A stretch of DNA of 64,000 nt, taken from Macrostomum lignano (lineage: Eukaryota). This document shows, piece after piece, positions 12,577 through 64,000 of the stretch. The notes beneath the pieces are model-generated. The model worked only from the letters and a program-made list of their open reading frames with translations. It made no database searches and had not been told where the DNA came from. The stretch is from positions 27,062 to 91,061 of the forward strand of contig NIVC01002743.1 in NCBI GenBank assembly GCA_002269645.1. The letters run 5' to 3'. A program made the position numbers and the translations under genes. How positions within the stretch are numbered: position 1 is the first letter of the stretch; every line of letters starts with the position of its first letter.

Positions 12577-12985
<409 letters not shown>

Positions 12986-13469
12986 AATGCAGGCTGCATT
13001 CGAGAGATCAAAGCGCAACGCTGGCCCCTCCGGCAGTTTCGCTCGCTCACCGCACAATTCGAGGCGTCTTAATTTAAGGGTTTTAAATCAAGCAGCGGTC
13101 TCGGAGCGACTGGGGCCTGAAGCTATAATAACAATGATTAGCAGTCGCCAGGGTAGCGCAATGAAACAGTGGGTGGCAGCCCCTGGCCCTTGGGTTGAGT
13201 AGGCAGGCAGGTTGAGTCAAAACAATGGCAGAGAAATTTTACGGAATGGCGTTTGTTGCCGACAGCAACGAATCACTGAGGGGAATAGCTTGGTCTTTTA
13301 TCGGAAGGAATTGCTGCTTGTTAAAATGACTCAGTCTTAGTAATGATACTAGGCATAAAAATAGTAATAATAACAATGGAATGCGACTATTCTGTAATTG
13401 TTATTTGTGTCTTCGTTGCTAGCTACTAACTCGCCGATACTCTCTACTCTTGTGTCTGATGAATATAAA

Positions 13470-30407: not shown

Positions 30408-31982
30408 ATTTATTCGGGTTTAAAAACAAATATATTGGCAGTGAAGTTATTGTAACATAATTTCAATATATATATGCTACTTTTGGGGGTGCACTGAGCA
30501 GTGTTGAGTAAAGATGTGTACGTATAATTAGTTAAAAACGTGAGTTGAAGCACGCTGATTGGTTAAAGATTGGCAGCTTAAAGCCTTGCACAAAAAATAT
30601 TAAAGATGTTAGGTGCTATAGAAAAACAGATTTAGAGCGTAGAAGTGTATGAATAAGCATCTTGAAAAGTTCAACAAATAAGTTATTTACGCCCGTAGAA
30701 TGAGAACAAATATTAAATTAAAACAGAGCACTGAGAACTTTTCAAAAGAAGTGCAAGTAAATAGATGTTATTACATAAACAGTAAATAAATTGAGTCGCC
30801 AGGCAGGCCACTAGTTGCAGTTGGCGGCGTCTGGTCACAGATCGCCGCCTGCACAGCCCCTGGTCACAGGCGACTGGGCACTGCAGATCAGTTGAGGCTA
30901 GATTATCAGTAGTAGTAGCACTAGTAGTTGCAGTAGTAGCTCGTAGTAGTAGTAATGGAAGTAGTAGTAGTACAAGTATTAGTAGAGTAGTAGTAGAGCA
31001 GTCGTAGGCGTAGTCGTAGTAGAGACGTACTGGTAAGCAGTTATTTGAAGTAGCCAGGCAGGCCACTAGTCGCAGTTGGCGGCGTCTGGTCACAGATCGC
31101 CGCCTGCACAGCCCCTGGTCACAGGCGACTGGGCACTGCAGATCAGTTGAGGCTAGATTATCAGTAGTAGTAGCACTAGTAGTTGCAGTAGTAGCTCGTA
31201 GTAGTAGTAATGGAAGTAGTAGTAGTACAAGTATTAGTAGAGTAGTAGTAGAGCAGTCGTAGGCGTAGTCGTAGTAGAGACGTACTGGTAAGCAGTTATT
31301 TGAAGTAGCCAGGCAGGCCACTAGTCGCAGTTGGCGGCGTCTGGTCACAGATCGCCGCCTGCACAGCCCCTGGTCACAGGCGACTGGGCACTGCAGATCA
31401 GTTGAGGCTAGATTATCAGTAGTAGTAGCACTAGTAGTTGCAGTAGTAGCTCGTAGTAGTAGTAATGGAAGTAGTAGTAGTACAAGTATTAGTAGAGTAG
31501 TAGTAGAGCAGTCGTAGGCGTAGTCGTAGTAGAGACGTACTGGTAAGCAGTTATTTGAAGTAGCCAGGCAGGCCACTAGTCGCAGTTGGCGGCGTCTGGT
31601 CACAGATCGCCGCCTGCACAGCCCCTGGTCACAGGCGACTGGGCACTGCGGATCAGTTGAAGCTAGATTTTCAGTAGTAGTAGCACTAGTAGTTGCAGTA
31701 GTAGTAGTAGTGGTAGTAGAGTAGTAGTAGTACAGTCGTAGTCGTAGCCGTAGTCGTAGTAGTGTCGTGCGTCTTAAATATTCAGCTGCAGAAATAGTAC
31801 TCTTGCTTATCCAAGTAGATTTTTGGCGGAGAATAGCTCGTATACGAAGATATTTTGTTGACAAACATGGCGAGCCTCAATAATAGTCCGGTCCTGGGTA
31901 CAGATATTCATAAGGCAGTTTGAAACTGCAAACCACGCACTCGGAAGATATTGAAGGTTACCAGTTGTCGAATGTTCGAAAA

Positions 31983-32022: not shown

Positions 32023-33598
32023 ATTTATTCGGGTTTAAAAACAAATATATTGGCAGTGAAGTTATTGTAACATAATTTCAATATATATATGCTACTTTTG
32101 GGGGTGCACTGAGCAGTGTTGAGTAAAGATGTGTACGTATAATTAGTTAAAAACGTGAGTTGAAGCACGCTGATTGGTTAAAGATTGGCAGCTTAAAGCC
32201 TTGCACAAAAAATATTAAAGATGTTAGGTGCTATAGAAAAACAGATTTAGAGCGTAGAAGTGTATGAATAAGCATCTTGAAAAGTTCAACAAATAAGTTA
32301 TTTACGCCCGTAGAATTGAGAACAAATATTAAATTAAAACAGAGCACTGAGAACTTTTCAAAAAGAAGTGCAAGTAAATAGATGTTATTACATAAACAGT
32401 AAATAAATTGAGTCGCCAGGCAGGCCACTAGTTGCAGTTGGCGGCGTCTGGTCACAGATCGCCGCCTGCACAGCCCCTGGTCACAGGCGACTGGGCACTG
32501 CAGATCAGTTGAGGCTAGATTATCAGTAGTAGTAGCACTAGTAGTTGCAGTAGTAGCTCGTAGTAGTAGTAATGGAAGTAGTAGTAGTACAAGTATTAGT
32601 AGAGTAGTAGTAGAGCAGTCGTAGGCGTAGTCGTAGTAGAGACGTACTGGTAAGCAGTTATTTGAAGTAGCCAGGCAGGCCACTAGTCGCAGTTGGCGGC
32701 GTCTGGTCACAGATCGCCGCCTGCACAGCCCCTGGTCACAGGCGACTGGGCACTGCAGATCAGTTGAGGCTAGATTATCAGTAGTAGTAGCACTAGTAGT
32801 TGCAGTAGTAGCTCGTAGTAGTAGTAATGGAAGTAGTAGTAGTACAAGTATTAGTAGAGTAGTAGTAGAGCAGTCGTAGGCGTAGTCGTAGTAGAGACGT
32901 ACTGGTAAGCAGTTATTTGAAGTAGCCAGGCAGGCCACTAGTCGCAGTTGGCGGCGTCTGGTCACAGATCGCCGCCTGCACAGCCCTGGTCACAGGCGAC
33001 TGGGCACTGCAGATCAGTTGAGGCTAGATTATCAGTAGTAGTAGCACTAGTAGTTGCAGTAGTAGCTCGTAGTAGTAGTAATGGAAGTAGTAGTAGTACA
33101 AGTATTAGTAGAGTAGTAGTAGAGCAGTCGTAGGCGTAGTCGTAGTAGAGACGTACTGGTAAGCAGTTATTTGAAGTAGCCAGGCAGGCCACTAGTCGCA
33201 GTTGGCGGCGTCTGGTCACAGATCGCCGCCTGCACAGCCCCTGGTCACAGGCGACTGGCACTGCGGATCAGTTGAAGCTAGATTTTCAGTAGTAGTAGCA
33301 CTAGTAGTTGCAGTAGTAGTAGTAGTGGTAGTAGAGTAGTAGTAGTACAGTCGTAGTCGTAGCCGTAGTCGTAGTAGTGTCGTGCGTCTTAAATATTCAG
33401 CTGCAGAAATAGTACTCTTGCTTATCCCAAGTAGATTTTTGGCGGAGAATAGCTCGTATACGAAGATATTTTGTTGACAAACATGGCGAGCCTCAATAAT
33501 AGTCCGGTCCTGGGTACAGATATTCATAAGGCAGTTTGAAACTGCAAACCACGCACTCGGAAGATATTGAAGGTTACCAGTTGTCGAATGTTCGAAAA

Positions 33599-33639: not shown

Positions 33640-35217
33640 ATTTATTCGGGTTTAAAAACAAATATATTGGCAGTGAAGTTATTGTAACATAATTTCAATA
33701 TATATATGCTACTTTTGGGGGTGCACTGAGCAGTGTTGAGTAAAGATGTGTACGTATAATTAGTTAAAAACGTGAGTTGAAGCACGCTGATTGGTTAAAG
33801 ATTGGCAGCTTAAAGCCTTGCACAAAAAATATTAAAGATGTTAGGTGCTATAGAAAAACAGATTTAGAGCGTAGAAGTGTATGAATAAGCATCTTGAAAA
33901 GTTCAACAAATAAGTTATTTACGCCCGTAGAATTGAGAACAAATATTAAATTAAAACAGAGCACTGAGAACTTTTCAAAAAGAAGTGCAAGTAAATAGAT
34001 GTTATTACATAAACAGTAAATAAATTGAGTCGCCAGGCAGGCCACTAGTTGCAGTTGGCGGCGTCTGGTCACAGATCGCCGCCTGCACAGCCCCTGGTCA
34101 CAGGCGACTGGGCACTGCAGATCAGTTGAGGCTAGATTATCAGTAGTAGTAGCACTAGTAGTTGCAGTAGTAGCTCGTAGTAGTAGTAATGGAAGTAGTA
34201 GTAGTACAAGTATTAGTAGAGTAGTAGTAGAGCAGTCGTAGGCGTAGTCGTAGTAGAGACGTACTGGTAAGCAGTTATTTGAAGTAGCCAGGCAGGCCAC
34301 TAGTCGCAGTTGGCGGCGTCTGGTCACAGATCGCCGCCTGCACAGCCCCTGGTCACAGGCGACTGGGCACTGCAGATCAGTTGAGGCTAGATTATCAGTA
34401 GTAGTAGCACTAGTAGTTGCAGTAGTAGCTCGTAGTAGTAGTAATGGAAGTAGTAGTAGTACAAGTATTAGTAGAGTAGTAGTAGAGCAGTCGTAGGCGT
34501 AGTCGTAGTAGAGACGTACTGGTAAGCAGTTATTTGAAGTAGCCAGGCAGGCCACTAGTCGCAGTTGGCGGCGTCTGGTCACAGATCGCCGCCTGCACAG
34601 CCCCTGGTCACAGGCGACTGGGCACTGCAGATCAGTTGAGGCTAGATTATCAGTAGTAGTAGCACTAGTAGTTGCAGTAGTAGCTCGTAGTAGTAGTAAT
34701 GGAAGTAGTAGTAGTACAAGTATTAGTAGAGTAGTAGTAGAGCAGTCGTAGGCGTAGTCGTAGTAGAGACGTACTGGTAAGCAGTTATTTGAAGTAGCCA
34801 GGCAGGCCACTAGTCGCAGTTGGCGGCGTCTGGTCACAGATCGCCGCCTGCACAGCCCCTGGTCACAGGCGACTGGGCACTGCGGATCAGTTGAAGCTAG
34901 ATTTTCAGTAGTAGTAGCACTAGTAGTTGCAGTAGTAGTAGTAGTGGTAGTAGAGTAGTAGTAGTACAGTCGTAGTCGTAGCCGTAGTCGTAGTAGTGTC
35001 GTGCGTCTTAAATATTCAGCTGCAGAAATAGTACTCTTGCTTATCCCAAGTAGATTTTTGGCGGAGAATAGCTCGTATACGAAGATATTTTGTTGACAAA
35101 CATGGCGAGCCTCAATAATAGTCCGGTCCTGGGTACAGATATTCATAAGGCAGTTTGAAACTGCAAACCACGCACTCGGAAGATATTGAAGGTTACCAGT
35201 TGTCGAATGTTCGAAAA

Positions 35218-35954: not shown

Positions 35955-39738
<3,784 letters not shown>

Positions 39739-39750
39739 GGATTCTTTCAC

Positions 39751-41512
39751 CTGAACTCCGTCTTGATGCGCTCGGCCGCTCGTTGGCTGAAGCTCAGCGT
39801 GAACAGAATCTCCAGGCCCTCCTGTACGTCCTGAGCCTCCGGGCTGTCCAGCATCAGCTTGACTACAGACAGCACGTTCAGCTCCACCAGCAGGTCTTTG
39901 TTCGCGTCGTTTAAGGCCAGCCGGTTGATGCCTTGAGTGAATAAGACAGTTTTGCTTGACCTGGGTGCTTGTATTCTTCCGGTATCTGCAGTTCTATCTG
40001 CCATCGACTTCACTCTACCCTTTTAAACTATTCTCTTAATTCCGTGAGACCTTTTCACTTCAACTCTCGATTCTATTCTACCCCTGATGCTGTTCTGAGC
40101 TGTCCAGCGATTCACTCGCATGAGAGCCAACCCTAAGCACAGAGAGTGAACGTGCCTGACGATTAGAAAGTCTTGGCCCGCTGTACACCCAGTGCGAAGT
40201 GTATGGAAGACCATATCACCGAAGGCCTATTATTATAGTACTCAACACGCCAGCGTCCCAAGCACCCCCAGCTCACACTTGGACATCTCCGCCACCGAGT
40301 AGCCGTCGCAGGCCCGCTCCGGAGCCTTCAGTCCCAGCCGCAGGATGCTGATCAGGTAGTTGATGCTTTTCTTGGCGCCCAGAAAGATCTCAGCCTGACT
40401 GTCGCCAACCGCGAATGCGATAAATATCAAAGCGGTAGCCTGCGGGCGCGCGGTTTTGGGGTTCAGTGCGCCTGATCGGTACTACTCGCAGTAGGAAGGA
40501 AGGGAGGGGGGAGGGAGGAAGGGAGAGGGGAGGAAGGGAGAGGGGAGGAAGGAAGGGAGGGGGAGGGAGGAAGGGAGGGGGGAGGGAGGAAGGGAGAGGG
40601 GAGGAAGGAAGGGAGAGGGGAGGTAGGAAGGGAGAGGGGAGGTAGGAAGGGAGGGGGGAGGAAGGTAGGGAGAGGGGAGGTAGGAAGGGAGGGGTGAGGA
40701 AGGAAGGGAGAGGGGAGGAAGGGAGAGGGGAGGAAGGAAGGGAGAGGGGAGGAAGGAGATATGGAGGGCAAATGAAGGAAAGGTTAGGAATAAACCGACA
40801 GCAGGTGAGAGGAATGAAAATGAAAGAGAATGAACACAAAGAGCAACTAAAAGGTCTGAGCGGTGCTCACCGACACCCTGGTGACAGGGCTGACCAGGTA
40901 GGGCTTGGCGCTGTCCACCATGCCGGGGAACTCAGCCAGCCTTCGGTACAGCTCGGAGTCATTCTTAAAGTACATGTTGTAGCCGATTCCGAGAGCGCAC
41001 TCGACCAGGGAGGCCGTGTTCAACTCCAGCATCTGGCCTCCGTCCTGCGCGTTGAGCAGGTCGGGAAAATATGAGCGAAAGAATTTGTCCTGGCTTTTGG
41101 CGAATTGCAGGCAAAACTCCAGCGACCTGTCCGTGCAGTTGAGCAGGCAGAGCAGGACTCGAACTGCCAGATCGTCGTAAGCGCCTCTCAAGCGGAGCAG
41201 CGTCAGCAGCAGGTCCACCAGGCTGGTCACCAGGCCGGAGTCCAGCATCTCCTGCTCGACAGTCCGCAGGTCGGCCTTCAGCTCCGGCTTCCACTTGGTG
41301 CCGTGCGAGCTCATCATCCAGTTGAGCTGGCTGAAACTGCGCGACAGTCGGCCAGCGGCGCCAGCATCCGCAGCGCCATCAGGCGCCGCAACGAAGGCAG
41401 CCAGGTCGGAGCCGATCTCCGACAGGCACCGGCGGCAGGCCTCCAGCGAGAAGTCCGGCTCGCTATGGGCTGCGGCCGCAGCCTTGGAGACGGCCTTGGA
41501 GCGGCGCTGCAT
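39751..41512 (-). CDS. ARM/HEAT-like repeat protein (resembles the N-terminal part of invertebrate ARM-TIR proteins); 3' exons not found
   Basis: Exon 41512-40871 (ATG CAG CGC, donor GTGAGC, phase 0), exon 40439-40277 (ATALIFIAF...EMSK, phase 1) and exon 39931-39751 (CINRLALNDANKDLLVELNVLSVVKLMLDSPEAQDVQEGLEILFTLSF, donor GTGAAA at 39750, phase 2). All phases join correctly. The product is helical and Leu-rich. Confidence 0.7.
40493..40760. repeat. GA-rich minisatellite in ARM-gene intron 1
   Basis: GGAAGGGAGAGGGGA-type units. Confidence 0.9.
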
Positions 41513-41928
41513 GACAGTCAGTTTGGCTGAGCTCACTGCTCTCTGTGCATGGAGTGCCAAGAGTGCGGCTCCGGAGCTAAAGTAGCAGCTCACTTGTTCA
41601 GCTTGCCGCTCTCTCGCCCAGCAGCTTAGAGCAGTGCTCACAGGGGGCAGGGGTGTACGCACAGGCTCTGCGTACACTGTGAGCAGTCCAGTGCTATCTA
41701 TCACCTATTTGTTGCTGAAAGGAATTCTTTTCAGTGTACACTGCAGTTTAGAAGCAGCCCTATACTCGCATGCTATCCACGCCGTACAATCGCTTCGTTG
41801 TCATGACTACCTGCATCGCTTGAAAAGCAGGCAATGTACAATCCGAGGATAGGAGTAGGTCGTGAGACTCTACTTATAGTAGGCCAGTATGGCGTACAGT
41901 ACACGTCGTCAATCTAGTATTGCGTCCT

Positions 41929-43784: not shown

Positions 43785-43943
43785 ACAGACAGACAGACAG
43801 ATAGGCAGATGCAGGCTTGAAATGAGGAGACACTGAGACAGATAGAGATTTAACTGGTAGGCACAGGCATCAGACAGACCGACAGACAGACAGACAGACA
43901 GACGGACACTAAGACAGACAGACAGACAGACAGACGGACACTA

Positions 43944-43983
<40 letters not shown>

Positions 43984-44023
43984 GGACACTAAGACAGACA
44001 GACAGACAGACAGACGGACACTA

Positions 44024-44055
<32 letters not shown>

Positions 44056-44063
44056 GGACACTA

Positions 44064-44103
<40 letters not shown>

Positions 44104-44111
44104 GGACACTA

Positions 44112-44151
<40 letters not shown>

Positions 44152-44195
44152 GGACACTAAGACAGACAGACAGACAGACAGACAGACGGACACTA

Positions 44196-44236
<41 letters not shown>

Positions 44237-44289
44237 CTAAGACAGACAGACAGACAGACAGACAGACACACAGACAGACAGACAGCAGG

Positions 44290-44323
<34 letters not shown>

Positions 44324-44350
44324 CACAGACAGACAGACAGACAGACAGAA

Positions 44351-44399
<49 letters not shown>

Positions 44400-44416
44400 C
44401 ACAGACAGACAGACAC

Positions 44417-44447
<31 letters not shown>

Positions 44448-44510
44448 GGCAGGCAGACAGAGAGACAGACAGAGACAGACAGACAGACAGAAAGACAGAC
44501 AGACAGACAC

Positions 44511-44545
<35 letters not shown>

Positions 44546-44554
44546 CACAGACAC

Positions 44555-44601
<47 letters not shown>

Positions 44602-44630
44602 CACAGACACACAGACAGACAGACAGCAGG
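43785..44630. repeat. (CAGA)n microsatellite with variants
   Basis: Lies just downstream of the DNAJB12 stop. Confidence 0.95.
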
Positions 44631-44726
44631 CAGCAGATAGGCGCGCATTGCACTATAATAGCGGTACAAAATTCGTGCTCGGGAGAGGGCAGAGCTCAGA
44701 GAGAAGGGCGGGCGGCCCAAAGACAG

Positions 44727-47268
44727 TCAGCCGCCGTACCGGTTCAGCATATCGCAGTGCGGAGTAGTCAGCTTGGACGCGATAGCATAAGCTTCTTTGT
44801 CGTGGTAATATTTTGCCCGGAATTGCATGGACTCCTCTGGAAGCAGAAAAGACACAAACGATAGTTGTCTAGTCGGTAGCTAGCTAGCTTTGCAATAATC
44901 TGTTATAATCATCAACAAAAAGGCAGAACAAAGGCTAAGAGGACTTACTGTAGCTGCGCTCCCTGTAGCACTTGACTCGCAATGTGTGAAAAAAGTCGTC
45001 TTCGATCTCGGCCTCCAGTTGGCCCAGATTGCCAGTGAATTCCGAGTGAAAATTCGGCTTCACATAGTAAGGCACCTTGCTGTGCCGAGTGTGCCGCACG
45101 TCCGAGTAGGCGCTGCGGGATTGACAGGTGCGAGCTCAAGAGTTAAATCCCTGCTCATGCTTACACTAAGGGATCTGGGGCAGGGAAGCCTGAAGGATCG
45201 GAGGGAGGGCAGCCTGAAGGATCGGGGGAAGGCAACCTGAAGGATCGGGGGTAGGCAACCTGAAGGATCGGGGGTAGGCAACCTGAAGGATCGGGGGAAG
45301 GCAACCTGAAGGATCGGGGGTAGGCAACCTGAAGGATCGGGGGTAGGCAACCTGAAGGATCGGGGGAAGGCAACCTGAAGGATCGGGGGTAGGCAACCTG
45401 AAGGATCGGGGGAGGCCGGGAGGGCAACCGGAGGGATCAGGGGAGGACACCCTGAAGGATCGGGAGAGGGCACCCTGAAGGATCAGGGGGAGGACACCCT
45501 GAAGGATTGGGGAGGACACCCTGAAGGATCAGGGGGAGGACACCCTGAAGGATCAGGGGAGGATACCCTGAAGGATCAGGGGGAGGACGCCCTGAAGGAT
45601 CGGGGGAGGACACCCTGAAGGATCAGGGGAGGACACCCTGAAGGATCAGGGGGAGGACGCCCTGAAGGATCAGGGGGAGGACGCCCTGAAGGATCAGGGG
45701 GAGGACACCATGAAGGATCAGGGGAGGACACCCTAAAGGATCAGGGGGAGGACACCCTAAAGGATCAGGGGAGGACACCCTGAAGGATCAGGGGGAGGAC
45801 GCCCTGAAGGATCAGGGGGAGGACACCCTGAAGGATCAGGGGAGGACACTGAAGGATCAGGGGGAGGACGCCCTGAAGGATCGGGGGAAGGCAACCTGAA
45901 AGCAGCAAAGCAGAAGACTTACTTGTTAGCGGACAGGCTGTACCAGGGGTCGCGGTGCATGAGGCCGGACAGCACGGACATGAGCATGAGCAGGAAGATG
46001 GGTGCAAACTGCAGCAGCATTGAATAAACATTGCGACCGGCCGCTTCGCCAGCCTGGCCGCCGTCGTGCCGGTGATGCCGCCGGGCCCGCCGCTGCCGCA
46101 TCTCGTAGGTCGGAAAGCCGCCGCCGAAGAACATGTTGAAAATTTCTTCTGGCGACACGTCGGCCTCGAATCCGCGCGAATAATCGTCGTAATAGTAGCC
46201 TCTGCCGTTGCTATGACGACGCGTTGCCTGCTGCTCCTCTTCTGAGCCGTACATATCGTAGCGCTGCCGCTTGGCGGGGTCGGCCAGGACGCTATAGGCG
46301 TTTCCAATTGCCTTAAATGCTTCCTGGGCGCCGGGCGCCTTATTCTTATCCGGGTGAAACTTCAGCGCCAGCTTTCGATACGATCGCTTCAGATCGTCAT
46401 CTGTGGCGTCCTTGGCAACGCCCAGGATCTCGTAGTAGTCTTTGGCCTGGCAGGGCATGCAGGAAACATTATTCAGTACATAGTAAATTAGGGAGTTCGT
46501 TTGCGCTCTACAACTACCGCAAGTTCTCGAGCACATTTCTCAAGCATTACAGACATTTCTCAAGCATGACAGACATTTCTCCAGCATGACAGACATTTCT
46601 CAAGCATGACAGACATTTCTCAAGCAACACATACATTTTTCAATTATGGAAGACATTTCTCAAGCATGACAGACATTTCTCAAGCATGACAGACATTTCT
46701 CAAGCATGACAGACATTTCTCAAGCAACACATACATTTTTCAATTATGGAAGACATTTCTCAAGCATGACAGACATTTCTCAAGCAACACATACATTTTT
46801 CAATTATGGAAGACATTTCTCAAGCATGACAGACATTTCTCAAGCATGACAGACATTTCCTTAAGCATGACAGACATTTCCCAAGCATCGCAGACATTTC
46901 TCCAGGCCCGGAGGCTCTGCTCAATAAACGTCTCAAATCACCTTGCGGATCCGCGCCACCCCGCTGGCCTGCTCCTCAGTAAACTGCCGCTCAGGATGGC
47001 CGCTGCCGCTGCTGGTCCGGCGTCTTCGGGCACCTCCATCGTCGTCCTGCGCATTCGACTGTCGCCCTCCCTGTCCACCGTGCGAGCCGCTGTTGCTAAG
47101 CAACTGTTCCAACAGACGCTTGGCCTCCGGACAGCCGTCGACAGCGTCTAAACGGCAGGCTTTGCGCAGCAGCCGCTCTGCTTTTTCCGCGTCACCAGAA
47201 GCCAGCGCGGTCTTGGCGATGCCCAGACAGCGAAGGCTCTCCTCCCGGTTGGCGCTGGTGTCGGCCAT
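44727..47268 (-). CDS. DNAJB12: DnaJ homolog subfamily B member 12/14 (ER J-protein: J domain, TM segment, DUF1977)
   Basis: Four exons: 47268-46942, 46446-45923, 45112-44949 and 44836-44727. All have GT-AG boundaries and consistent phases, giving 374 aa. The J domain DYYEILGV...HPDKN is followed by [20 protein letters not shown], a TM segment, and DUF1977-like VPYYVKPNF...[16 protein letters not shown]...TPHC. Confidence 0.92.
45180..45900. repeat. 23-24-bp minisatellite CCCTGAAGGATCAGGGGGAGGACA in DNAJB12 intron 2
   Basis: Tandem copies in two subtypes. Confidence 0.93.
46525..46905. repeat. 20-bp minisatellite CAGACATTTCTCAAGCATGA in DNAJB12 intron 1
   Basis: Tandem copies. Confidence 0.93.
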
Positions 47269-51800: not shown

Positions 51801-52896
51801 TTGGAAATCCAGTTGCCAATGGCTATTTTTGGTTGCCCATTGGCAACTAGCCAAATTCTTGAGGATAAATATTTCCAAGACACTAAATTTTGAGTAACAT
51901 GTACATATTATACTAACAATAACAATAACAAACTAACAATTCTATCATATCATATCAATTCATATGGCGCTTTTTTACACTTACAAAAACAATTTTTGAA
52001 ATTGGCAACTGGCACGGGGAAAATGAAGTTGCCAGATTGGCCTCTGATGCCTAAAATCCAGTTGCCAATGGCTTTTTTGGGTAGCCAGTGGCTACCGTAT
52101 GGCCTAAAAAAACCCAGGAACACAGATACAATTAGCAGTCACAAAACACGGTCACAGTGAACAGTAACAAAACACGGATACAATTAGCAGTCACAAAACA
52201 CGGTCACAGTGAACATTTACAACACACGGTCACAATGAACAGACACAAAACACGGATACAGTTAGCAGTCACAAAGCACAGTCACAGTGAACAGTCACAA
52301 AACACGGCCACAAAACAGTCACCTGCTGACTGGACATAAAAAACGTCACAAAGCACGGTCAAAACACGATAACAGGCTACAATCGTCGCAGGCCTAAATG
52401 ATGGCGAGTTTAGTTTTTATCGGTAATAAAAATTGACAAAGGCACAAAAATAAACGCATTCATATAGCAATGCACTACAGAATGCTGCACCAACCAGTTC
52501 AGCTGACGAAGTGCGCAGGCTGCAGTGAAACACACGACTGCTGGGACCCTCGCGCTCCTCCATAAACCGCTTCCAGGACGCTCGAGCGCTGGGCGCCACC
52601 AAGTCGGCCTTGTTCAGCACAAGGGCGTGCGGCCTGGCAGCCCGGCTGTCCTCAAACAGGCGAGCCCGACCAGTTATTGGGATGCGAGCGTCGTGTACTT
52701 CAACAAATGCATCGACCGCGGCCAGCTTCTGGTTGATGCGCTTCCGACCTTTGTGTATATGGCCAGGGTGCCACATTAGGCTTTCCTTGGACACCAGTCG
52801 CAGCTCATGGCGGTTTCTTGTCAAGCTTGATTGGGCGTCGGCACTGTTGCCATGGCAACACCGGAGACTGCGCCAATAGATGATGCGCTGCTGCAT
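48837..52896 (-). CDS. MTG1: Mitochondrial ribosome-associated GTPase 1 (RbgA/YlqF family circularly permuted GTPase)
   Basis: Four exons: 52896-52495, 51317-51102, 49979-49739 and 49060-48837. Phases are 0, 0 and 1, giving 360 aa. Motifs [19 protein letters not shown] (G4), [12 protein letters not shown] (G1), AGVT (G2), LDSPGI (G3) and C-terminal [12 protein letters not shown] occur in the G4-G1-G3 permuted order. Confidence 0.93.
49175..49695. repeat. 33-bp minisatellite TGGAAATCTCACCTATGCAGATAGCAATCAGTA in MTG1 intron 3
   Basis: About 15 copies. Confidence 0.95.
50105..51047. repeat. 32-bp minisatellite CCCATCCTACATACCATCCCAAGTGTGAGACT in MTG1 intron 2
   Basis: About 29 copies. Confidence 0.95.
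51685..52370. repeat. Degenerate CAGTCACAAAACACGG minisatellite in MTG1 intron 1, interrupted by the MITE
   Basis: The same motif occurs on both sides of 51785-52118. Confidence 0.8.
51785..52118. mobile_element. MITE-like non-autonomous DNA transposon (~334 bp) in MTG1 intron 1
   Basis: Terminal inverted repeats CTGGGTTTTTT / AAAAAACCCAG. The flanking direct repeat AACACAGA lies at 51777-51784 and 52119-52126 (the right end has one extra G). There is an internal direct repeat AAATCCAGTTGCCAATGGCT. The element interrupts a minisatellite. Confidence 0.65.
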
Positions 52897-54330
52897 TGGC
52901 AGCTTGTTGCAAACAGTGGCAGCCTTAAAAATCGTTAGAAACAATTTCAGATGAATGAGACCTTCCTTATAATATCATTATTATTGCACAAGGGCTGTGC
53001 TGTGGGCATACATGCGCAACTGCTGGCCGACCTGGCCGATCCGGCCACCGTAAATTGTGGTAGACGAAGTAGCGAAAATGCCCACCCCAAAGAACAGACG
53101 TGGTACTATACTAATTAGCTGACGAGGCACTTAGCCTTAATAAGCCAGCATAGTTACCCCTGCCGTTTACCCAAAATTGTATTAATCTTGCTCTAGGGTT
53201 TCTTTCACAAGTAAGTCGCATTTTTTGTCAAAAAGTAAGTCGCATGGTTTAACCTGTTCTTATAGTTTAACCCTCAAAAGGTTAAGCCACAATAACAGAA
53301 AAGGCTCTATAAGAAATACATGGCAATCTTTCCTTACTTTCCACTCCCCTAAAAATTCTAAGAAAATAACAAGGTACTGTGAGGTAATATTTATTTTAAA
53401 TAGTATTTTTCTTATAAAATTTATCTTTCAAGAAAAGTTAGGTCAGGATATAGTTCACTTTAAAAATATAATTAGCTTATTCTATAATAAATTTATTTAA
53501 ATAATTAGCCATATATTTAGTAAGGGACAGCTTTATTTCTAATAGTCACAATTTCTAATACTCTAATAATCTAAAATAATTTTAAATTGCTAAATTTCCA
53601 ATAATCTCAAATTTGCTATTAAAGTGGTGAATCTCATTTCCCATTTAAGGGGATTCTAATTTTCTTAAAGATAGTTATAAAATATAATAAAAGCTTAGTA
53701 ATTACAACAATATTAGAGGTCAACATGAAAATAAAATATTTTATAGTTAGTTCTAATTAAATTTATTTTAAAATCAGTAATTTTTTAGGAAAAATTATTA
53801 TAGGGCCTAACTTAACTTTTCTTTAAAAGATCATTTTAATTAGTTAAAAACATTTTTTAGAATTTATAAAAGGTACAAAAAGGATTTAAAAAATGGCCTA
53901 TCATGGGCCCATGAGACCCTAAGACTTTATTAAAGGGTTAAACATTTTATTTAATTGTTTTTATTTAATAATCAAATTAATAATAGTCCTAATTTTTATA
54001 AATTATATACTACTCTTACTTACAATTATTAATAGGCATATATCATCTATTAGAAATAAAGGTTTATTAAGTTTAAGATATAATAATAAATATAATTTTA
54101 ACAATTTAAAAATATTTAAATGGAAAGCTTACTCAATCTTAACAATATCCTTTTAATAATATTAATATTTAATATATGCTAATATTTAAATTTATGCTAG
54201 ATGGCTAGCTAAGTCAAGATTAAAAATAAGAATAAAATGCACAAAACTTTTGTAGCCAACAAAGAACAAGCTTGAATTATATGATAGTGATAAATACAAA
54301 TAAAAATTGATTAGAAAGATGCATACCAGG

Positions 54331-56412: not shown

Positions 56413-57141
56413 ATGGCGCGCAAGCATGTCGACGTATCTGATCCACAAAAGACTGCGCTGTCAGTAAAGAGAAATCGGGGTGGTGGATCAAGCTGCTACG
56501 AAACATCGCATTGCAAGAGAGATTCGGAGCCGATATCTTATGCTCAGAGAAAAATCACAGATGAAAGTATTGATCTCGACTCTGCCTCTACTCCACTTCA
56601 ATTAGTGACAGTGAAGCCGAAACTCGAACCACAAATTTCCGTTTTGTCCACTGACAGCGGATTTCTGCCCAGAGATATCCAGGACTCCTCATTTGTAGAA
56701 GACGTGATGGAGGAACTAAACAGCCAAGGCATCAGTCATTCTGATATTATTTGCTGTCATGGTTGCCATGCAGGCACTCAAGAAAGACCACTTAAGCTTC
56801 CTGGCCTTGCAGTATCAAACGGAACACCAGAAACAGCCTGCCAAAAGAAGTCGAGAGAAGCGTGCCAGCGGGATCTCGACGGTCCTTCCTGCAAGAAGGT
56901 GTTCACGCAGAAAGCTTTGGAAGGTCAGGCTGAAGTGAAAAACGAAAAGCGCATTAAGAACAACGCAGCTTCGAGAAAGTCCAGAGCAAGTCGGAAGATG
57001 AATACTTTGGTAAAGGAGCAGGAAATTGCAGCTCTTCAAGCAGACAATCAAAGGTTGGCGATCGTTCTCGAAGACTTCACTTCTATAGCCGCAGCCTGCA
57101 AGCAGTGGATTGTGCGAAACATGGAAACTCCAGACACTTAA
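56413..57141 (+). CDS. Intronless bZIP transcription factor (PAR/C-EBP-like basic region)
   Basis: 242-aa ORF. The C-terminal KRIKNNAASRKSRASRK basic region has the invariant N-x7-R, followed by the heptad coiled coil KEQEIAALQADNQRLAIVLEDF. AATAAA lies at 57651-57656. Confidence 0.8.
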   Translation: MARKHVDVSDPQKTALSVKRNRGGGSSCYETSHCKRDSEPISYAQRKITDESIDLDSASTPLQLVTVKPKLEPQISVLSTDSGFLPRDIQDSSFVEDVMEELNSQGISHSDIICCHGCHAGTQERPLKLPGLAVSNGTPETACQKKSREACQRDLDGPSCKKVFTQKALEGQAEVKNEKRIKNNAASRKSRASRKMNTLVKEQEIAALQADNQRLAIVLEDFTSIAAACKQWIVRNMETPDT

Positions 57142-59789: not shown

Positions 59790-60299
59790 TTAGAATCCTT
59801 TTAATTCTGCATGTTGACCTCGACAGATCTCCACAATGCACCACCAACAGAAAAATAATGGATTCGGCTCAGTACAAAATGCTAATACAAGATTCGCCGC
59901 ACTCTACTGAAAGTACGATGCAACAGCAAATCAAAGCAGAGCAATCCAAATTGTGCAGAATAAAAACAAAATGAGTTGTAAATTATTAATTTGTTCCCGT
60001 ATATTTTTGTTGCACATAGAGGTGTTGAAATATATCTTTTCCTAACATTAACTTCAATTTATCGTGCAGCAGTTGATCGAATCTGACAGGCCACAGGTAA
60101 TTAATAACTGTGGGAACAGCTCGCAGGAATTACTCTCACTCTAATAGCTGGTGAAATGTCTAATCTATTCATCTGTTTAACCGAAATCGAGCTACTTCAA
60201 AGCGTGACAAAACAAAATAGCCGAGTTCTACTGCATAGCTTACTGTCAGTAGTTTAGCATCGCAATTGCAACTTGACTGCAACTGCTAATTCAGGGCTG

Positions 60300-60653
60300 A
60301 TGACGCTTGCGGAACAGGCCGCTGTAGTACTGCTGGAACAGGTTCTCCGCGCTCTGCCCGCTGCAGCCCGACGGTCCGGCCGGCCGGCACGCCTGCCTGC
60401 CGCCCAGGCCGCGGTAGCCGGACTTGGAGGGCTCCACCGAGCAGCACTGACCGGCCGGGCAGTCCGCGTCCGAGTCGCAGCCGACGCGTTCGCTGCTGCC
60501 CCGGCCGCCGCTGCCTCCGTCGGCGCCTCCGAGGTCGCCAACAATTTCGCCGATGCCGACGCCGCCCTCGCTTCCCAGCTGTGCCTTGTTGGACGTGCAG
60601 CGGCCGTAGGTGGCTGCGACATTGAGGGAGGAGTTTTCACTGTTTACCCCTGA
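60300..60653 (+). CDS. Hypothetical small Ala-rich protein, or terminal exon of an unidentified gene
   Basis: Sharply GC-rich island in AT-rich surroundings. ATG at 60300, 117 codons ending ...LCLVGRAAAVGGCDIEGGVFTVYP*. A CAG acceptor-like site lies just upstream (60292-60294). No family recognised. Confidence 0.45.
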   Translation: MTLAEQAAVVLLEQVLRALPAAARRSGRPARLPAAQAAVAGLGGLHRAALTGRAVRVRVAADAFAAAPAAAASVGASEVANNFADADAALASQLCLVGRAAAVGGCDIEGGVFTVYP

Positions 60654-63299
60654 TGACCATTTGTATCACCTGAACTTCCAGAATAGCAAATGCACGCAGG
60701 GCAAATGCGTTTTGTCTTTGGTTGATTCATGAGTTTATCCAGTTTCAGTGAAAGGCCAGTTTCTCCGACAATGTTAAATGGGATTCTGCCATGGAGGATG
60801 CGGGTCGCGAAAGATTTATGCAAGAAAAATTGTTTACATACAATACAGTTATGGGATAGTGGAACTCCTAGTGCCCCAATTATATTCCTATTTTGTGTTA
60901 GCTAAAAACATTCAACACAACTGAAATACCTTTTCTTTGGGTCCCAACGCTTCCTATTTTTTAAAAATCCTGACAATACTTTAACTTACCTAGCTCTGAT
61001 ATTTTACAGGGTTAAAACAAACTACTAACAGTAGCGTAAATGTCTATCTGCATTCTTTTCCCCATTGTCCTACGGTTTACGAGCGGATGTATCAGCTATG
61101 TGTAGTATTATACCTCGACGAAAGTGCCATTAAAAGCTATTAAAAATCAAGCTATATCCAATTTGTGGTTGGACAAAATCGTAAAGTATGTTTCTTGTCC
61201 TGCAATAGATTTCAGATTAAATCTCTGTACTTCAAAACCTAATACACTCCATTTTTAACACACCGTCATTTTTGTCTCGTATAACATAAGCCCCAGCTGA
61301 ACTTTGAAAACCAGGAAATTTGCTAAAATTTGTGATGCAGGAACGCTTATTATACGAGAGTATTCCTCCACAGGTTCTTACTAAGTATCAACAATAGAAG
61401 TGCCAACAACGGTAACTTCTGGTGGTCCTTGGTTCTATCGGCAATGGTCTCATATCGATGAAAAACAGCAGCTCTATAGAATGCAACTTTGTAGAAGTTT
61501 CCTGAATTTTGCGACTCCCGTAGTTCCTTGTTGACTGCAATTCAGCCGTCTGAGCCGCGACTGCAGTTTTCAAACTCTTCAATTATTAATGAAAAGGAAA
61601 TACAAGGCATTTATAGGCGCTTGTTTGCTTAGAAACTCCGCCTAGGATACAAATTATTCAAACCGTTGAACGAGTCGTGCAGCCATTTCTAGTGCTCAAC
61701 GCAACCCTGCCTGAGGTCCCTGCAGCGGGGAGCAATCAAGGAAAACTCCTCAGTGTCGTCCTGAGCTACTTCTTAACGGCTTCTAGCTTGAGTCCGTGGG
61801 ACAGTCAAAATTGAATGAGCAATTAAAACTGACATAGTAGAAGGCTGAAGAGACATAGGCTGAGAGATAATTAAGCGAAATAAAAAATTCACGGAAGAGG
61901 GCCGGGCCTTTTTTCGGTTGGAAAAGTCGATGGTGGGCCTCACCAGGGAGTGGATGAACGGACGGCAGCCGTGTGCAGCGTGACAAAAACTTATTTCTTG
62001 TCATTTTCAGAGTGGCGAGGCGCAAATGATTGGAATTGATTGACATCCAGGTCAATCAATTTGGTCAGCGGTCGATCATGTCTCCCAGTTGTCTGCTACT
62101 TTTCGTATCGCTTCTGAAGCACTTTTATACTGTAGCTAACACAACCTTAGGCCGTCACAGCAACGCCTGAGATGTGGCTCGATTGTCATTGGACCATTCA
62201 AGGCATCCCAAATCCGTCACAGACGTGTCCCAAATGTAAGTAAACAAAAGCAGAACAGCAGTACAATCGAGGACCAAGCCGTCAAAGTGCCTCCAGAATC
62301 CAATATACTAAAAATAATGAGCCAAGCTCGTCAAAAGTTGACGATCAGCAGTATAGCTGCCACTTTTGTAGATTTTTGCATCCCCAAATCCCAAAGAAAT
62401 TCAATTACCGATTGCAGTCAGCGGACCAAAGAGCTTCTTTAGCCAAAGGAGGATTTACTTTTTCTGGCTCTTTGAGCTGGTTTTGAGTCTCATTTGTTGC
62501 ATTTCGGCAGCAGAAATCGCACACGCACACACACACACACACACACTCAGCAATGGACTCACAGAAGAGAAGGCTGGGTTTTCAATCGGCCTCCGTTTGT
62601 CACGCGCCAACTGACATAAATCTCGTTCAGTTTCATTTCCTTCGCAACTAATAAAGAATCTTATAGTTTGCTGTTGTCACCCCTGACTGGATTAAAATTA
62701 TTGACACTGTTCGTTATGCAAATACATGCACAACAATCAATCAATATACACCAAATCCAGTGTTGGCGAACAGTGGCTCAACATAATTAAGTGGCTCAAC
62801 AATGCGCCAGGCATGCACATTTCAATTATCTGCAATACAAAACAGTCTGCACTTTATGCTCTAAAGCTTGTCCTGCCCTTACTGGCAATTCACTACGCCG
62901 GTCTCTCAGCCTCAGCCTCGGGGCGAAGACCCACAAACGGATTTTCTCTTGTCTATCAGCGGCTACCTACAGTTGATTTATGATTGACCTGCTCGGACCA
63001 CATTTAGGATTGGTTCATTACTGTGCCGCGTGACCAGCAAACTGCTCATTGCTCACAACAGCAAGCCGGCGCGTGAATATGCTAAGCTAATTGATGCATT
63101 TGATTGAAGGCCGATTGGTAATCGTTTTTTTAGACATTTTCGCTTTCGCTCCCTAATCAACCAAATTGGAGCGGCTTTTGCAGCATTCGTAATTTCCCTC
63201 TTAATTTGCCTAAATCATGGCATACCGAATTGATCATTTCCCATTCACATTCACGATAGACACCTCGGCCATTTATAGATATCCCGGTCATGTATAGAA

Positions 63300-63490
63300 A
63301 TCTCTCGGCCATAGACACCTCGGCCACATATACATGTAGACACCTCAACCATAGACACCTCGGCCATGTATATTCATCTCGGCCATAGACATCTCAGCCA
63401 TAGACATCTCAGCCATAGACATCTCAGCCATAGACATCTCAGCCATAGACATCTCAGCCATAGACATCTCAGCCATAGACATCTCGGCCA
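63300..63490. repeat. 15-bp minisatellite AGCCATAGACATCTC
   Basis: About 10 copies, immediately after the exon-2 donor of the knottin-like gene. Confidence 0.92.
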
Positions 63491-63511
63491 AAAGCTCCAA
63501 GACGCACTCAC

Positions 63512-63999
63512 CCTGGCTAGCCTTCTCGCAGGTAAAGTCCTCGCAGCAGGCGTCCTGCGTGAAGCAGATTCCGCCGTCCTTTTCGCACTGAAAGTTTTAT
63601 AGAAATATAGCCTTAATTTCTTACTTTATTTCTTAACGACTAGCAAATCGTGCTATGCCTTCTCGCACTTTATAAATCTTGTTTCTAAGAAACGGTTCTA
63701 AAATAACGTGTCAGAACAAAAAGATTTTTTTCAGCAAATTTAAATTGAAATTTTGAGATAAAACTGCACCGGAAGCTTTTGGGTGAGGAGTGAAGCTGAG
63801 AACTCTGACAGCCCGCATTCACTGAATAGGCGGAGCGCTAGGATGGAAACCATTGATGAGGCATCGGCAGCATGCGGACCTGACTCACTACTGCTCTATC
63901 CTGCTGGTACCGCCTTGCAGCACAGCAAGGCCCACTGCCCTCCATGCGCAGCAACAGTAGTGTGAAAACAATGGACACGCACATAACTTTTGCTAGCAT
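63512..63999 (-). CDS. Secreted cysteine-rich peptide precursor with inhibitor-cystine-knot-like spacing
   Basis: Exon 1 is 63999-63889: MLAKVMCVSIVFTLLLLRMEGSGPCCAARRYQQDRAV (signal peptide-like, donor GTGAGT). Exon 2 is 63587-63512, after TTTCAG: CEKDGGICFTQDACCEDFTCEKASQ, followed by G|GTGAGT. Phase 0 joins correctly. Not in the ORF track because it is spliced. Confidence 0.72.
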
Positions 64000-64000
64000 T

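Follow-up and report, generated by a model that had tools for sequence, protein, structure and literature searches.

The window analysed here, 64,000 nucleotides of Macrostomum lignano DNA (assembly GCA_002269645.1, contig NIVC01002743.1, positions 27,062 to 91,061), contains on its minus strand a short cysteine-rich exon at 63587..63512. Comparison with the GenBank annotation and with other assembled copies of the locus identified this segment as exon 2 of a three-exon M. lignano gene, with the window carrying an allelic or duplicate copy of BOX15_Mlig016503g1. Overall, we consider it likely that the locus is a three-exon gene whose secreted two-domain product acts outside the cell. An original prediction, made from the letters of the window alone, had proposed a spliced gene for a secreted knottin-like peptide, with a signal-peptide exon opening at an ATG at 63999. 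The Cys-rich exon, the splicing, the presence of a signal peptide and the C-C-CC-C-C framework of that proposal all stood, whereas its exon 1 did not.

Gene structure

The gene had been regarded as unannotated. However, GenBank already calls it on a sister contig, NIVC01002116.1 (locus L001), as BOX15_Mlig016503g1, a hypothetical protein of 171 residues (P0001). It is uncalled only on the truncated contig NIVC01002743.1, because the contig end removes exon 1. Window exons 2 and 3 translate exactly to residues 40-171 of P0001. We mapped the exons of P0001 with GT-AG borders on the sister-contig locus L004, and exons 2 and 3 likewise in the window; exon by exon, the protein reads MAHTRRLALTAAASAILLIACCCTADAFIGIIGGKGRGA / CEKDGGICFTQDACCEDFTCEKASQ / ATYGRCTSNKAQLGSEGG...CDSDADCPAGQCCSVEPSKSGYRGLGGRQACRPAGPSGCSGQSAENLFQQYYSGLFRKRHQP.

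Exon 1 lies outside the window, at 10001-10117 of L004. It consists of 39 codons with a GTGAGT donor in phase 0, and encodes the signal peptide MAHTRR...TADA followed by FIGIIGGKGRGA. This true signal-peptide exon (MAHTRRLALTAAASAILLIACCCTADA...) is thereby placed ~4.3 kb upstream of exon 2. Exon 2 (L004 14414-14489, window 63587..63512, minus strand) is 76 nt long, with acceptor TTTCAG and donor GTGAGT, and is entered in phase 0 and left in phase 1. Its product is CEKDGGICFTQDACCEDFTCEKASQ, and its last nucleotide opens an Ala codon; this peptide contains Cys1-Cys5 and matches residues 40-64 of P0001 exactly. The five-Cys stretch itself, CEKDGGICFTQDACCEDFTC, follows the spacing C-x6-C-x5-CC-x4-C. 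The limits originally drawn for this exon, an acceptor before 63587 and a donor after 63512, were therefore those of P0001 exon 2 to the nucleotide.

The coding part of exon 3 (L004 17388-17710, window 60613..60291, minus strand) comprises 323 nt including the stop, behind the acceptor GTCGCAG. It supplies residues 65-171 of P0001, beginning with (A)TYGRC, which contains Cys6, and continuing with a Gly-rich linker, a second six-Cys domain (CDSDADCPAGQCC...C...C) and the tail NLFQQYYSGLFRKRHQP*. Its stop at window 60291 coincides with the annotated gene end at L001 13880. A downstream exon had been named as the fallback source of the sixth Cys, and exon 3, 2.9 kb on, provides it.

On the minus strand, intron 2 (60614..63511, 2.9 kb) starts with GTGAGTGC and holds a 15-bp minisatellite at 63337-63490. 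Only the 3' end of intron 1 (63588..64000, minus strand) is in the window, since the contig ends inside it; on the sister contig the intron is 4.3 kb in full. There (L004 10118-14413), it was found to consist mostly of two satellite arrays, one with a ~13-bp unit, GGGATCTGGGATC, and one with a ~11-bp unit, CAGATCCCATA, of ~1.4 kb. Both arrays sit between the true exon 1 and the intronic segment that had been taken for a signal exon.

Six-frame translation of the window yields the exact five-Cys pattern a single time, compared with 0.0 occurrences per window in 100 block shuffles, and even a loose six-Cys inhibitor cystine knot (ICK) pattern is expected only 0.08 times per window. The Cys exon is therefore not a chance feature. 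In addition, the GenBank annotation was built from genome-guided RNA-seq transcript assemblies (StringTie/TACO/TBONE/TransDecoder) and not by ab initio prediction (PMC5730564), so that the junctions of BOX15_Mlig016503g1 are transcript-based.

The open reading frame upstream of exon 2

The exon 1 of the original prediction, with its signal peptide and RR site, occupies 63889..63999 on the minus strand. All of the letters on which the proposal relied are present in the window, namely the ATG at 63999, the hydrophobic segment, the RR, the GTGAGT donors, the TTTCAG acceptor and the Cys spacing. The ATG opens MLAKVMCVSIVFTLLLLRMEGSGPCCAARRYQQDRAV, which is followed by GTGAGT after 63889; the open reading frame (ORF) includes the hydrophobic stretch MLAKVMCVSIVFTLLLL and RR at residues 29-30, and 301 nt separate its donor from the acceptor before 63587. 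In the window's own sequence, this frame is open and phase-matched to exon 2, its GTGAGT donor is strong and its N-terminus is hydrophobic. Taken at face value, these features would describe a two-exon gene that starts at 63999, is spliced 63889>63587, and then either reads through to a sixth Cys in the tripeptide GEC or continues into some third exon.

The contig copies gave a different picture. Contig NIVC01002743.1 terminates at window 64000, the window being its last 64 kb (100% identical to locus L003), and any sequence upstream of the ATG is therefore invisible in the window. The sister contigs NIVC01002116.1 and NIVC01003359.1 (loci L001 and L002) are 99.94% identical to the window across 7 kb, and both extend further. 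The existence of three copies is consistent with what has been published on the assembly and its source: Mlig_3_7 (GCA_002269645.1) is redundant, and the line that was sequenced, DV1, carries extra chromosomes (PMC5730564).

Over window positions 60000-64000, the three copies differ at three positions, all of them 1-nt indels in short repeats or homopolymers, with 0 substitutions. This pattern suggests residual long-read errors in the assembly. Relative to both sister contigs, the window lacks one nucleotide at 63947/63948, where it reads CTGCTGCGCATGG and L001/L002 read CTGCTGCTGCATGG, and it is this deletion that opens the frame of the proposed exon. Given that the differences among copies are indels only and that the site is 53 nt from the contig end, the deletion is most probably a long-read assembly error. 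With the extra base of the sister copies, the ORF from the ATG becomes MLAKVMCVSIVFTLLLLLHGGQWALLCCKAVPAG*, ending 9 nt ahead of the GTGAGT donor, and the donor-phased frame starts only at MEGSGP..., without a signal peptide. The frame is thus broken in both other assembled copies (L001, L002 and L004), that is, in two of the three. A weak donor, GCG|GTACCA, that would phase the sister-contig intronic ORF with exon 2 was considered and rejected, as the site is weak and unsupported and the phasing a roughly one-in-three coincidence.

The annotated transcript, moreover, has another exon 1, 4.3 kb upstream, and the segment at 63889..63999 lies outside that transcript, within intron 1 and 413 nt upstream of exon 2. 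No counterpart of this ORF was found at the paralog locus Mlig015013g1. Read-through of the donor after 63512 does give G-E-C, and the frame then stays open because the 15-bp minisatellite at 63337-63490 translates as (AEMSM)n. However, GEC is simply the donor consensus G|GTGAGTGC in translation, and Mlig015013g1 has GGTGAGTCT at this position, giving G-E-S, so the supposed sixth Cys is not kept. The two-exon model is largely refuted by these observations, and we give it very little chance of being correct. The in-frame appearance of the 63889..63999 ORF is best read as a coincidence helped by an assembly indel.

Paralogs of the gene

We searched P0001 against 1.84 billion representative proteins with phmmer and obtained four matches (E 3e-27 to 9e-9), all from M. 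lignano and none from arthropods. A profile search of the same representatives returned five matches (one added), again all from M. lignano. The paralogs are Mlig030832g1/g2, Mlig022787g1-3 and Mlig015013g1, together with models of an older gene set. Within the searched databases, the family is small (four to five loci) and restricted to M. lignano. A search for paralogs just past the window edge had been suggested originally. On the sister contig, the upstream neighbour is a syntaxin gene and the 10 kb beyond the window edge contain no tandem paralog; the rest of the window contains none either.

The paralogs are 40-52% identical to P0001; they have both six-Cys domains and the tail in common with it, and differ in the length of the linker, which is very variable. 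The family alignment contains a signal peptide, an N-terminus of the form [FY]xG[IT]xxG, and then C-x6-C-x5-CC-x4-C-x10/11-C, in which GG.C.T..ACC and GRC are conserved. The C-terminal domain (C-domain) follows C.(S/T)(D/N).DCP...CC...C...C. Cys1-Cys6 are invariant in all five sequences and the tail almost so; counting both domains, invariance extends to ten of the twelve Cys, with P0004 alone lacking the first two in the C-domain. The paralog Mlig015013g1 (44% identity) has the same three-exon layout, and its exon 2 likewise spans Cys1 to Q in 25 codons and 1 nt. At this locus, the sole paralog locus checked, the introns lie where they do in the window gene, in phase 0 before Cys1 and in phase 1 five residues after Cys5.

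The window gene has all the traits of this Mlig016503/030832/022787/015013 family (two six-Cys domains, an LFxQYYS tail and the introns). Its copy differs from BOX15_Mlig016503g1 solely in the loss of exon 1 to the contig end, exons 2 and 3 being identical. Conservation of Cys residues, tail and intron phases at 40-52% identity shows that the sequences form a real protein-coding family under constraint. UniRef gives the paralogs the automatic names 'Ixodegrin protein', 'ITG-like peptide', 'Secreted protein', 'Disintegrin domain-containing protein' and 'RYDR_ITPR domain-containing'. Those names (entries P0003, P0005, P0007 and P0012) are mutually discordant, and the sequence comparisons made here lend them no support. 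Entry P0005 also resembles a frameshifted model of Mlig030832.

Protein architecture and fold

From its N-terminus, P0001 consists of a signal peptide, a short Gly-rich segment (FIGIIGGKGRGA), a first six-Cys domain (N-domain), a Gly/Ser/Asp linker, a second six-Cys domain and a tail. The signal peptide comprises MAHTRR, a hydrophobic core (12-residue Kyte-Doolittle mean of 2.54) and TADA|F. In the spliced product, the N-domain reads C-x6-C-x5-CC-x4-C-x10-C, with the phase-1 intron between Cys5 and Cys6. Its six Cys are thus in C-C-CC-C-C order with loops within the ICK range, as they are in the five family members. The second domain reads C-x5-C-x4-CC-x17-C-x7-C. The C-terminal tail, NLFQQYYSGLFRKR, is conserved among paralogs as [NS]LFxQYYSxxxR[KS][RG] and is helix-like. 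Neither P0001 nor the aligned family has a propeptide with a basic cleavage site ahead of Cys1. The product is accordingly a 171-residue two-domain protein instead of the small knottin peptide first envisaged, which goes part of the way towards an outcome, membership of a larger protein, that the original prediction had itself listed as refuting it.

Conotoxin, spider-toxin or agatoxin-like membership had also been suggested. In Pfam searches with the whole of P0001, each domain and every family member, no model reached its cut-off, and P0001 as a whole matched none. The best Toxin_12 match had E=0.068 (12-14.3 bits against a cut-off of 21), and further sub-threshold matches, each in one paralog, were to Conotoxin_I2 (E=0.034), Atracotoxin (E=4.7) and Dickkopf_N (E=0.16). 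Other Conotoxin families matched no member at E<=10, and Pfam Prokineticin gave no match. Searches of PDB by sequence, with P0001 and with the family profile, returned nothing meaningful. No curated toxin or neuropeptide family can be shown to include the protein.

AlphaFold2, run with and without the five-sequence alignment, gave a predicted local distance difference test (pLDDT) score of ~76-80 for residues 41-70 and of ~74-82 where the second domain begins; it predicted a beta-hairpin at 57-61/68-72. The Foldseek lists against PDB were headed by Draxin (probability 0.84-0.94, E 0.24-0.27) and then the N-terminal domain of Dkk4. The remainder was largely ICK, including funnel-web and tarantula toxins, psalmotoxin, tachystatin B, Evasin-3 and a Momordica knottin; these matches had TM-scores, normalised to the target, of 0.5-0.72 and root-mean-square deviations (rmsd) of 1.4-3 A over 30-40 residues. 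We attribute the Draxin and Dkk4 matches to the C-domain, the lists not reporting which domain was aligned. Together, AlphaFold2 and Foldseek point only weakly to a cystine-knot fold; the protein has a knottin-like framework and probably a knottin fold.

Strength of the gene model

Several observations weigh against the three-exon gene and its secreted two-domain product. Of the three near-identical copies, a single one carries a call of the gene, and transcript support comes only through the published annotation method. The AlphaFold2 models have a mean pLDDT of 57, a low overall confidence, and disulfide connectivity is not readable from them. No fold or hidden Markov model (HMM) match is significant, every Foldseek E being >= 0.24 and all Pfam scores below cut-off. 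Finally, no expression or functional data for any family member were found in the searchable literature, in text or supplements.

Some of these points would also fit an annotation artefact with no such protein made. The single call, the label 'hypothetical protein' and the lack of any mention in the literature found are what such an artefact would leave. Against this, paralogs at 40-52% identity retain tail, intron positions and the twelve Cys, with all twelve present in four of the five sequences. Conservation of this kind is unexpected for non-coding sequence, and the annotation is transcript-derived. An artefact is therefore extremely improbable, and the three-exon gene remains our preferred reading.

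Possible function

If the three-exon gene is translated as modelled, the protein would enter the secretory pathway and its signal peptide would be cut after TADA, giving a predicted mature start at F27. The two modules may then fold independently and be locked by disulfides, with a knottin fold for the first and a Dkk/Draxin/prokineticin-like one for the second. Once secreted, the protein could bind a receptor or channel at the cell surface, where its flexible linker would permit binding at two sites. The C-terminal RKR might be trimmed by a convertase and a carboxypeptidase, as in prohormones.

Among possible roles, that of an endogenous hormone- or neuropeptide-like ligand seems the most likely, and we favour it tentatively. 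M. lignano grazes on diatoms and is not known to have a venom apparatus; together with the small size of the family, the conserved loops and tail, and the possible trimming at the basic RKR, this argues for an endogenous ligand. A gland, seminal or structural secretion would be an unlikely alternative on the same architecture, from which alone this division of roles was drawn. Searches of literature and supplements, by gene identifier and for knottins of flatworms, returned no match.

The same three-exon protein might instead serve defence or offence, as an antimicrobial or toxin-like molecule that blocks channels or damages microbes, perhaps bivalently. The ICK framework itself is suggestive in this respect, and the Foldseek neighbours are mostly venom ICKs, with tachystatin B (antimicrobial), Evasin-3 (from a tick), DkTx and Hi1a among them. 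The family is lineage-restricted, like many effector families, and Toxin_12, Conotoxin_I2 and Atracotoxin matched below threshold. Yet a family of four to five loci is small, conservation is good in its linear tail and in loop residues, which are not hypervariable, no basic-site propeptide precedes Cys1, no match is significant, and the animal has no known venom apparatus. On balance, a defensive or offensive role appears rather unlikely.

Another reading would make the family a diverged orthologue of arthropod ITG-like, agatoxin-like or ixodegrin/prokineticin-type precursors. The names 'ITG-like peptide' and 'Ixodegrin protein' on paralogs would fit, and the Tenebrio ITG-like precursor is similarly built, as it too combines a signal peptide with several C..C..CC..C..C modules and with a C-terminal peptide beside basic residues (PMC9552230 supplement). 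In addition, hhalign aligned the family profile with the Tenebrio agatoxin-like peptide over 40 columns across the whole N-domain (single-comparison E=0.006). The probability of that alignment was only 6%, however, and the agatoxin-like peptide has eight Cys against six in the flatworm N-domain. A relation to the Tenebrio molitor ITG-like precursor was rejected at the sequence level (hhalign probability 0.6%, 16 columns; BLASTP E=0.11). As the 1.84 billion representatives also yielded no arthropod match and the automatic names are unverified, we regard orthology as improbable.

A more far-reaching idea is that the family represents an undescribed flatworm class of bivalent ligands, combining a knottin with a Dkk/prokineticin-like module and acting as hormones or neuromodulators, perhaps as a lophotrochozoan counterpart of the orphan arthropod ITG-like/agatoxin-like precursors. 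We see only a slim chance of this. If it were true, the orphan-ligand question would become testable in a transgenic model amenable to RNA interference (RNAi).

Significance

These results bring to notice a small and uncharacterised family of Macrostomum, made up of secreted, disulfide-rich proteins with two domains, which databases list only as hypothetical or under automatic names that mislead. Should its N-domain be a true knottin, free-living flatworms would join the groups that use this scaffold, and M. lignano is an animal in which RNAi, in situ hybridisation and transgenesis are in routine use. There is also a lesson for reading genes from a single contig. A Cys-rich exon was correctly spotted here, while the adjoining 'signal exon' proved intronic, its open frame arising most probably from a 1-base error at the contig end, and the read-through Cys proved to be donor consensus.

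Other features of the window

The 64-kb window is eukaryotic, rich in micro- and minisatellites, and contains cadherin, DnaJ, GTPase and bZIP coding pieces; Rfam and tRNA scans found no RNA genes in it. A single-exon bZIP_2 gene (56413-57141, plus strand, 242 residues) is annotated identically on all three contigs. Two long, GC-rich cadherin-repeat ORFs lie on the minus strand at 18688-20565 and 21760-22881 (Pfam Cadherin E=1e-56 and 7e-28; Cadherin_2 matched as well). Both probably belong, as exons, to a single protocadherin-like gene, with a 20-bp minisatellite (20673-21738) between them. Also on the minus strand are a DnaJ-domain exon (45919-46536; annotated product of 374 residues with DnaJ and DUF1977), a GTPase exon (52417-52944; annotated MMR_HSR1, 364-368 residues) and a 285-residue ORF (40847-41704). 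This last ORF has a protein-like composition and no Pfam match, and may be an exon of an uncharacterised gene.

Tetranucleotide arrays at 35955-39742, 16923-18134, 12577-12986 and 43871-44637 are made up of (ATAG)n (~3.8 kb), (GACA)n (~1.2 kb) and (CAGA)n, and yield many long spurious ORFs that translate as (LSIY)n, (SVCL)n and (TDRQ)n. Between 29299 and 34968, blocks of a 255-257-bp tandem repeat (30794-31734, 32411-33349 and 34028-34968) recur at ~1.6-kb intervals, which is a higher-order tandem duplication. This region adjoins a 530-N assembly gap at 28769-29298.

Comparison with known systems

The arthropod ITG-like and agatoxin-like precursors resemble the flatworm protein in being secreted precursors with C..C..CC..C..C modules. 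They differ from it in Cys number and show no significant similarity to it in sequence, and the flatworm protein has no dibasic site that would free a short peptide before the tail. The protein falls outside the conotoxin O-superfamily (framework VI/VII), given the flatworm origin, the lack of a basic-site propeptide and the lack of any Conotoxin family above cut-off.

With ICK peptides more broadly (Toxin_12 spider toxins, conotoxin framework VI/VII, tachystatin and Evasin-3), the N-domain has in common the C-C-CC-C-C order, the C-x6-C-x5-CC-x4-C start and a predicted C-terminal beta-hairpin. In contrast to these peptides, its loop 4 is long (10-11 residues), an intron falls between Cys5 and Cys6, and the domain is part of a 171-residue two-domain protein that lacks a basic-site propeptide. 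The host, moreover, is not known to be venomous, and no HMM reaches threshold.

The C-domain resembles the Dickkopf_N, Draxin and prokineticin/colipase-type modules, including tick ixodegrins, in that it starts C-x5-C-x4-CC with C.(S/T)D.DCP; it has six Cys rather than ten, and all scores are sub-threshold. As a whole, the protein recalls the double-knot toxins DkTx and Hi1a, which are likewise built of two C-C-CC-C-C modules and a linker and which both appear in the Foldseek lists. Full-length superposition on them is nevertheless poor (rmsd 11-14 A, probability <= 0.2), and the flatworm protein is set apart by a long, Gly-rich and variable linker, a second module that looks more Dkk/Draxin-like, and an extra conserved tail.

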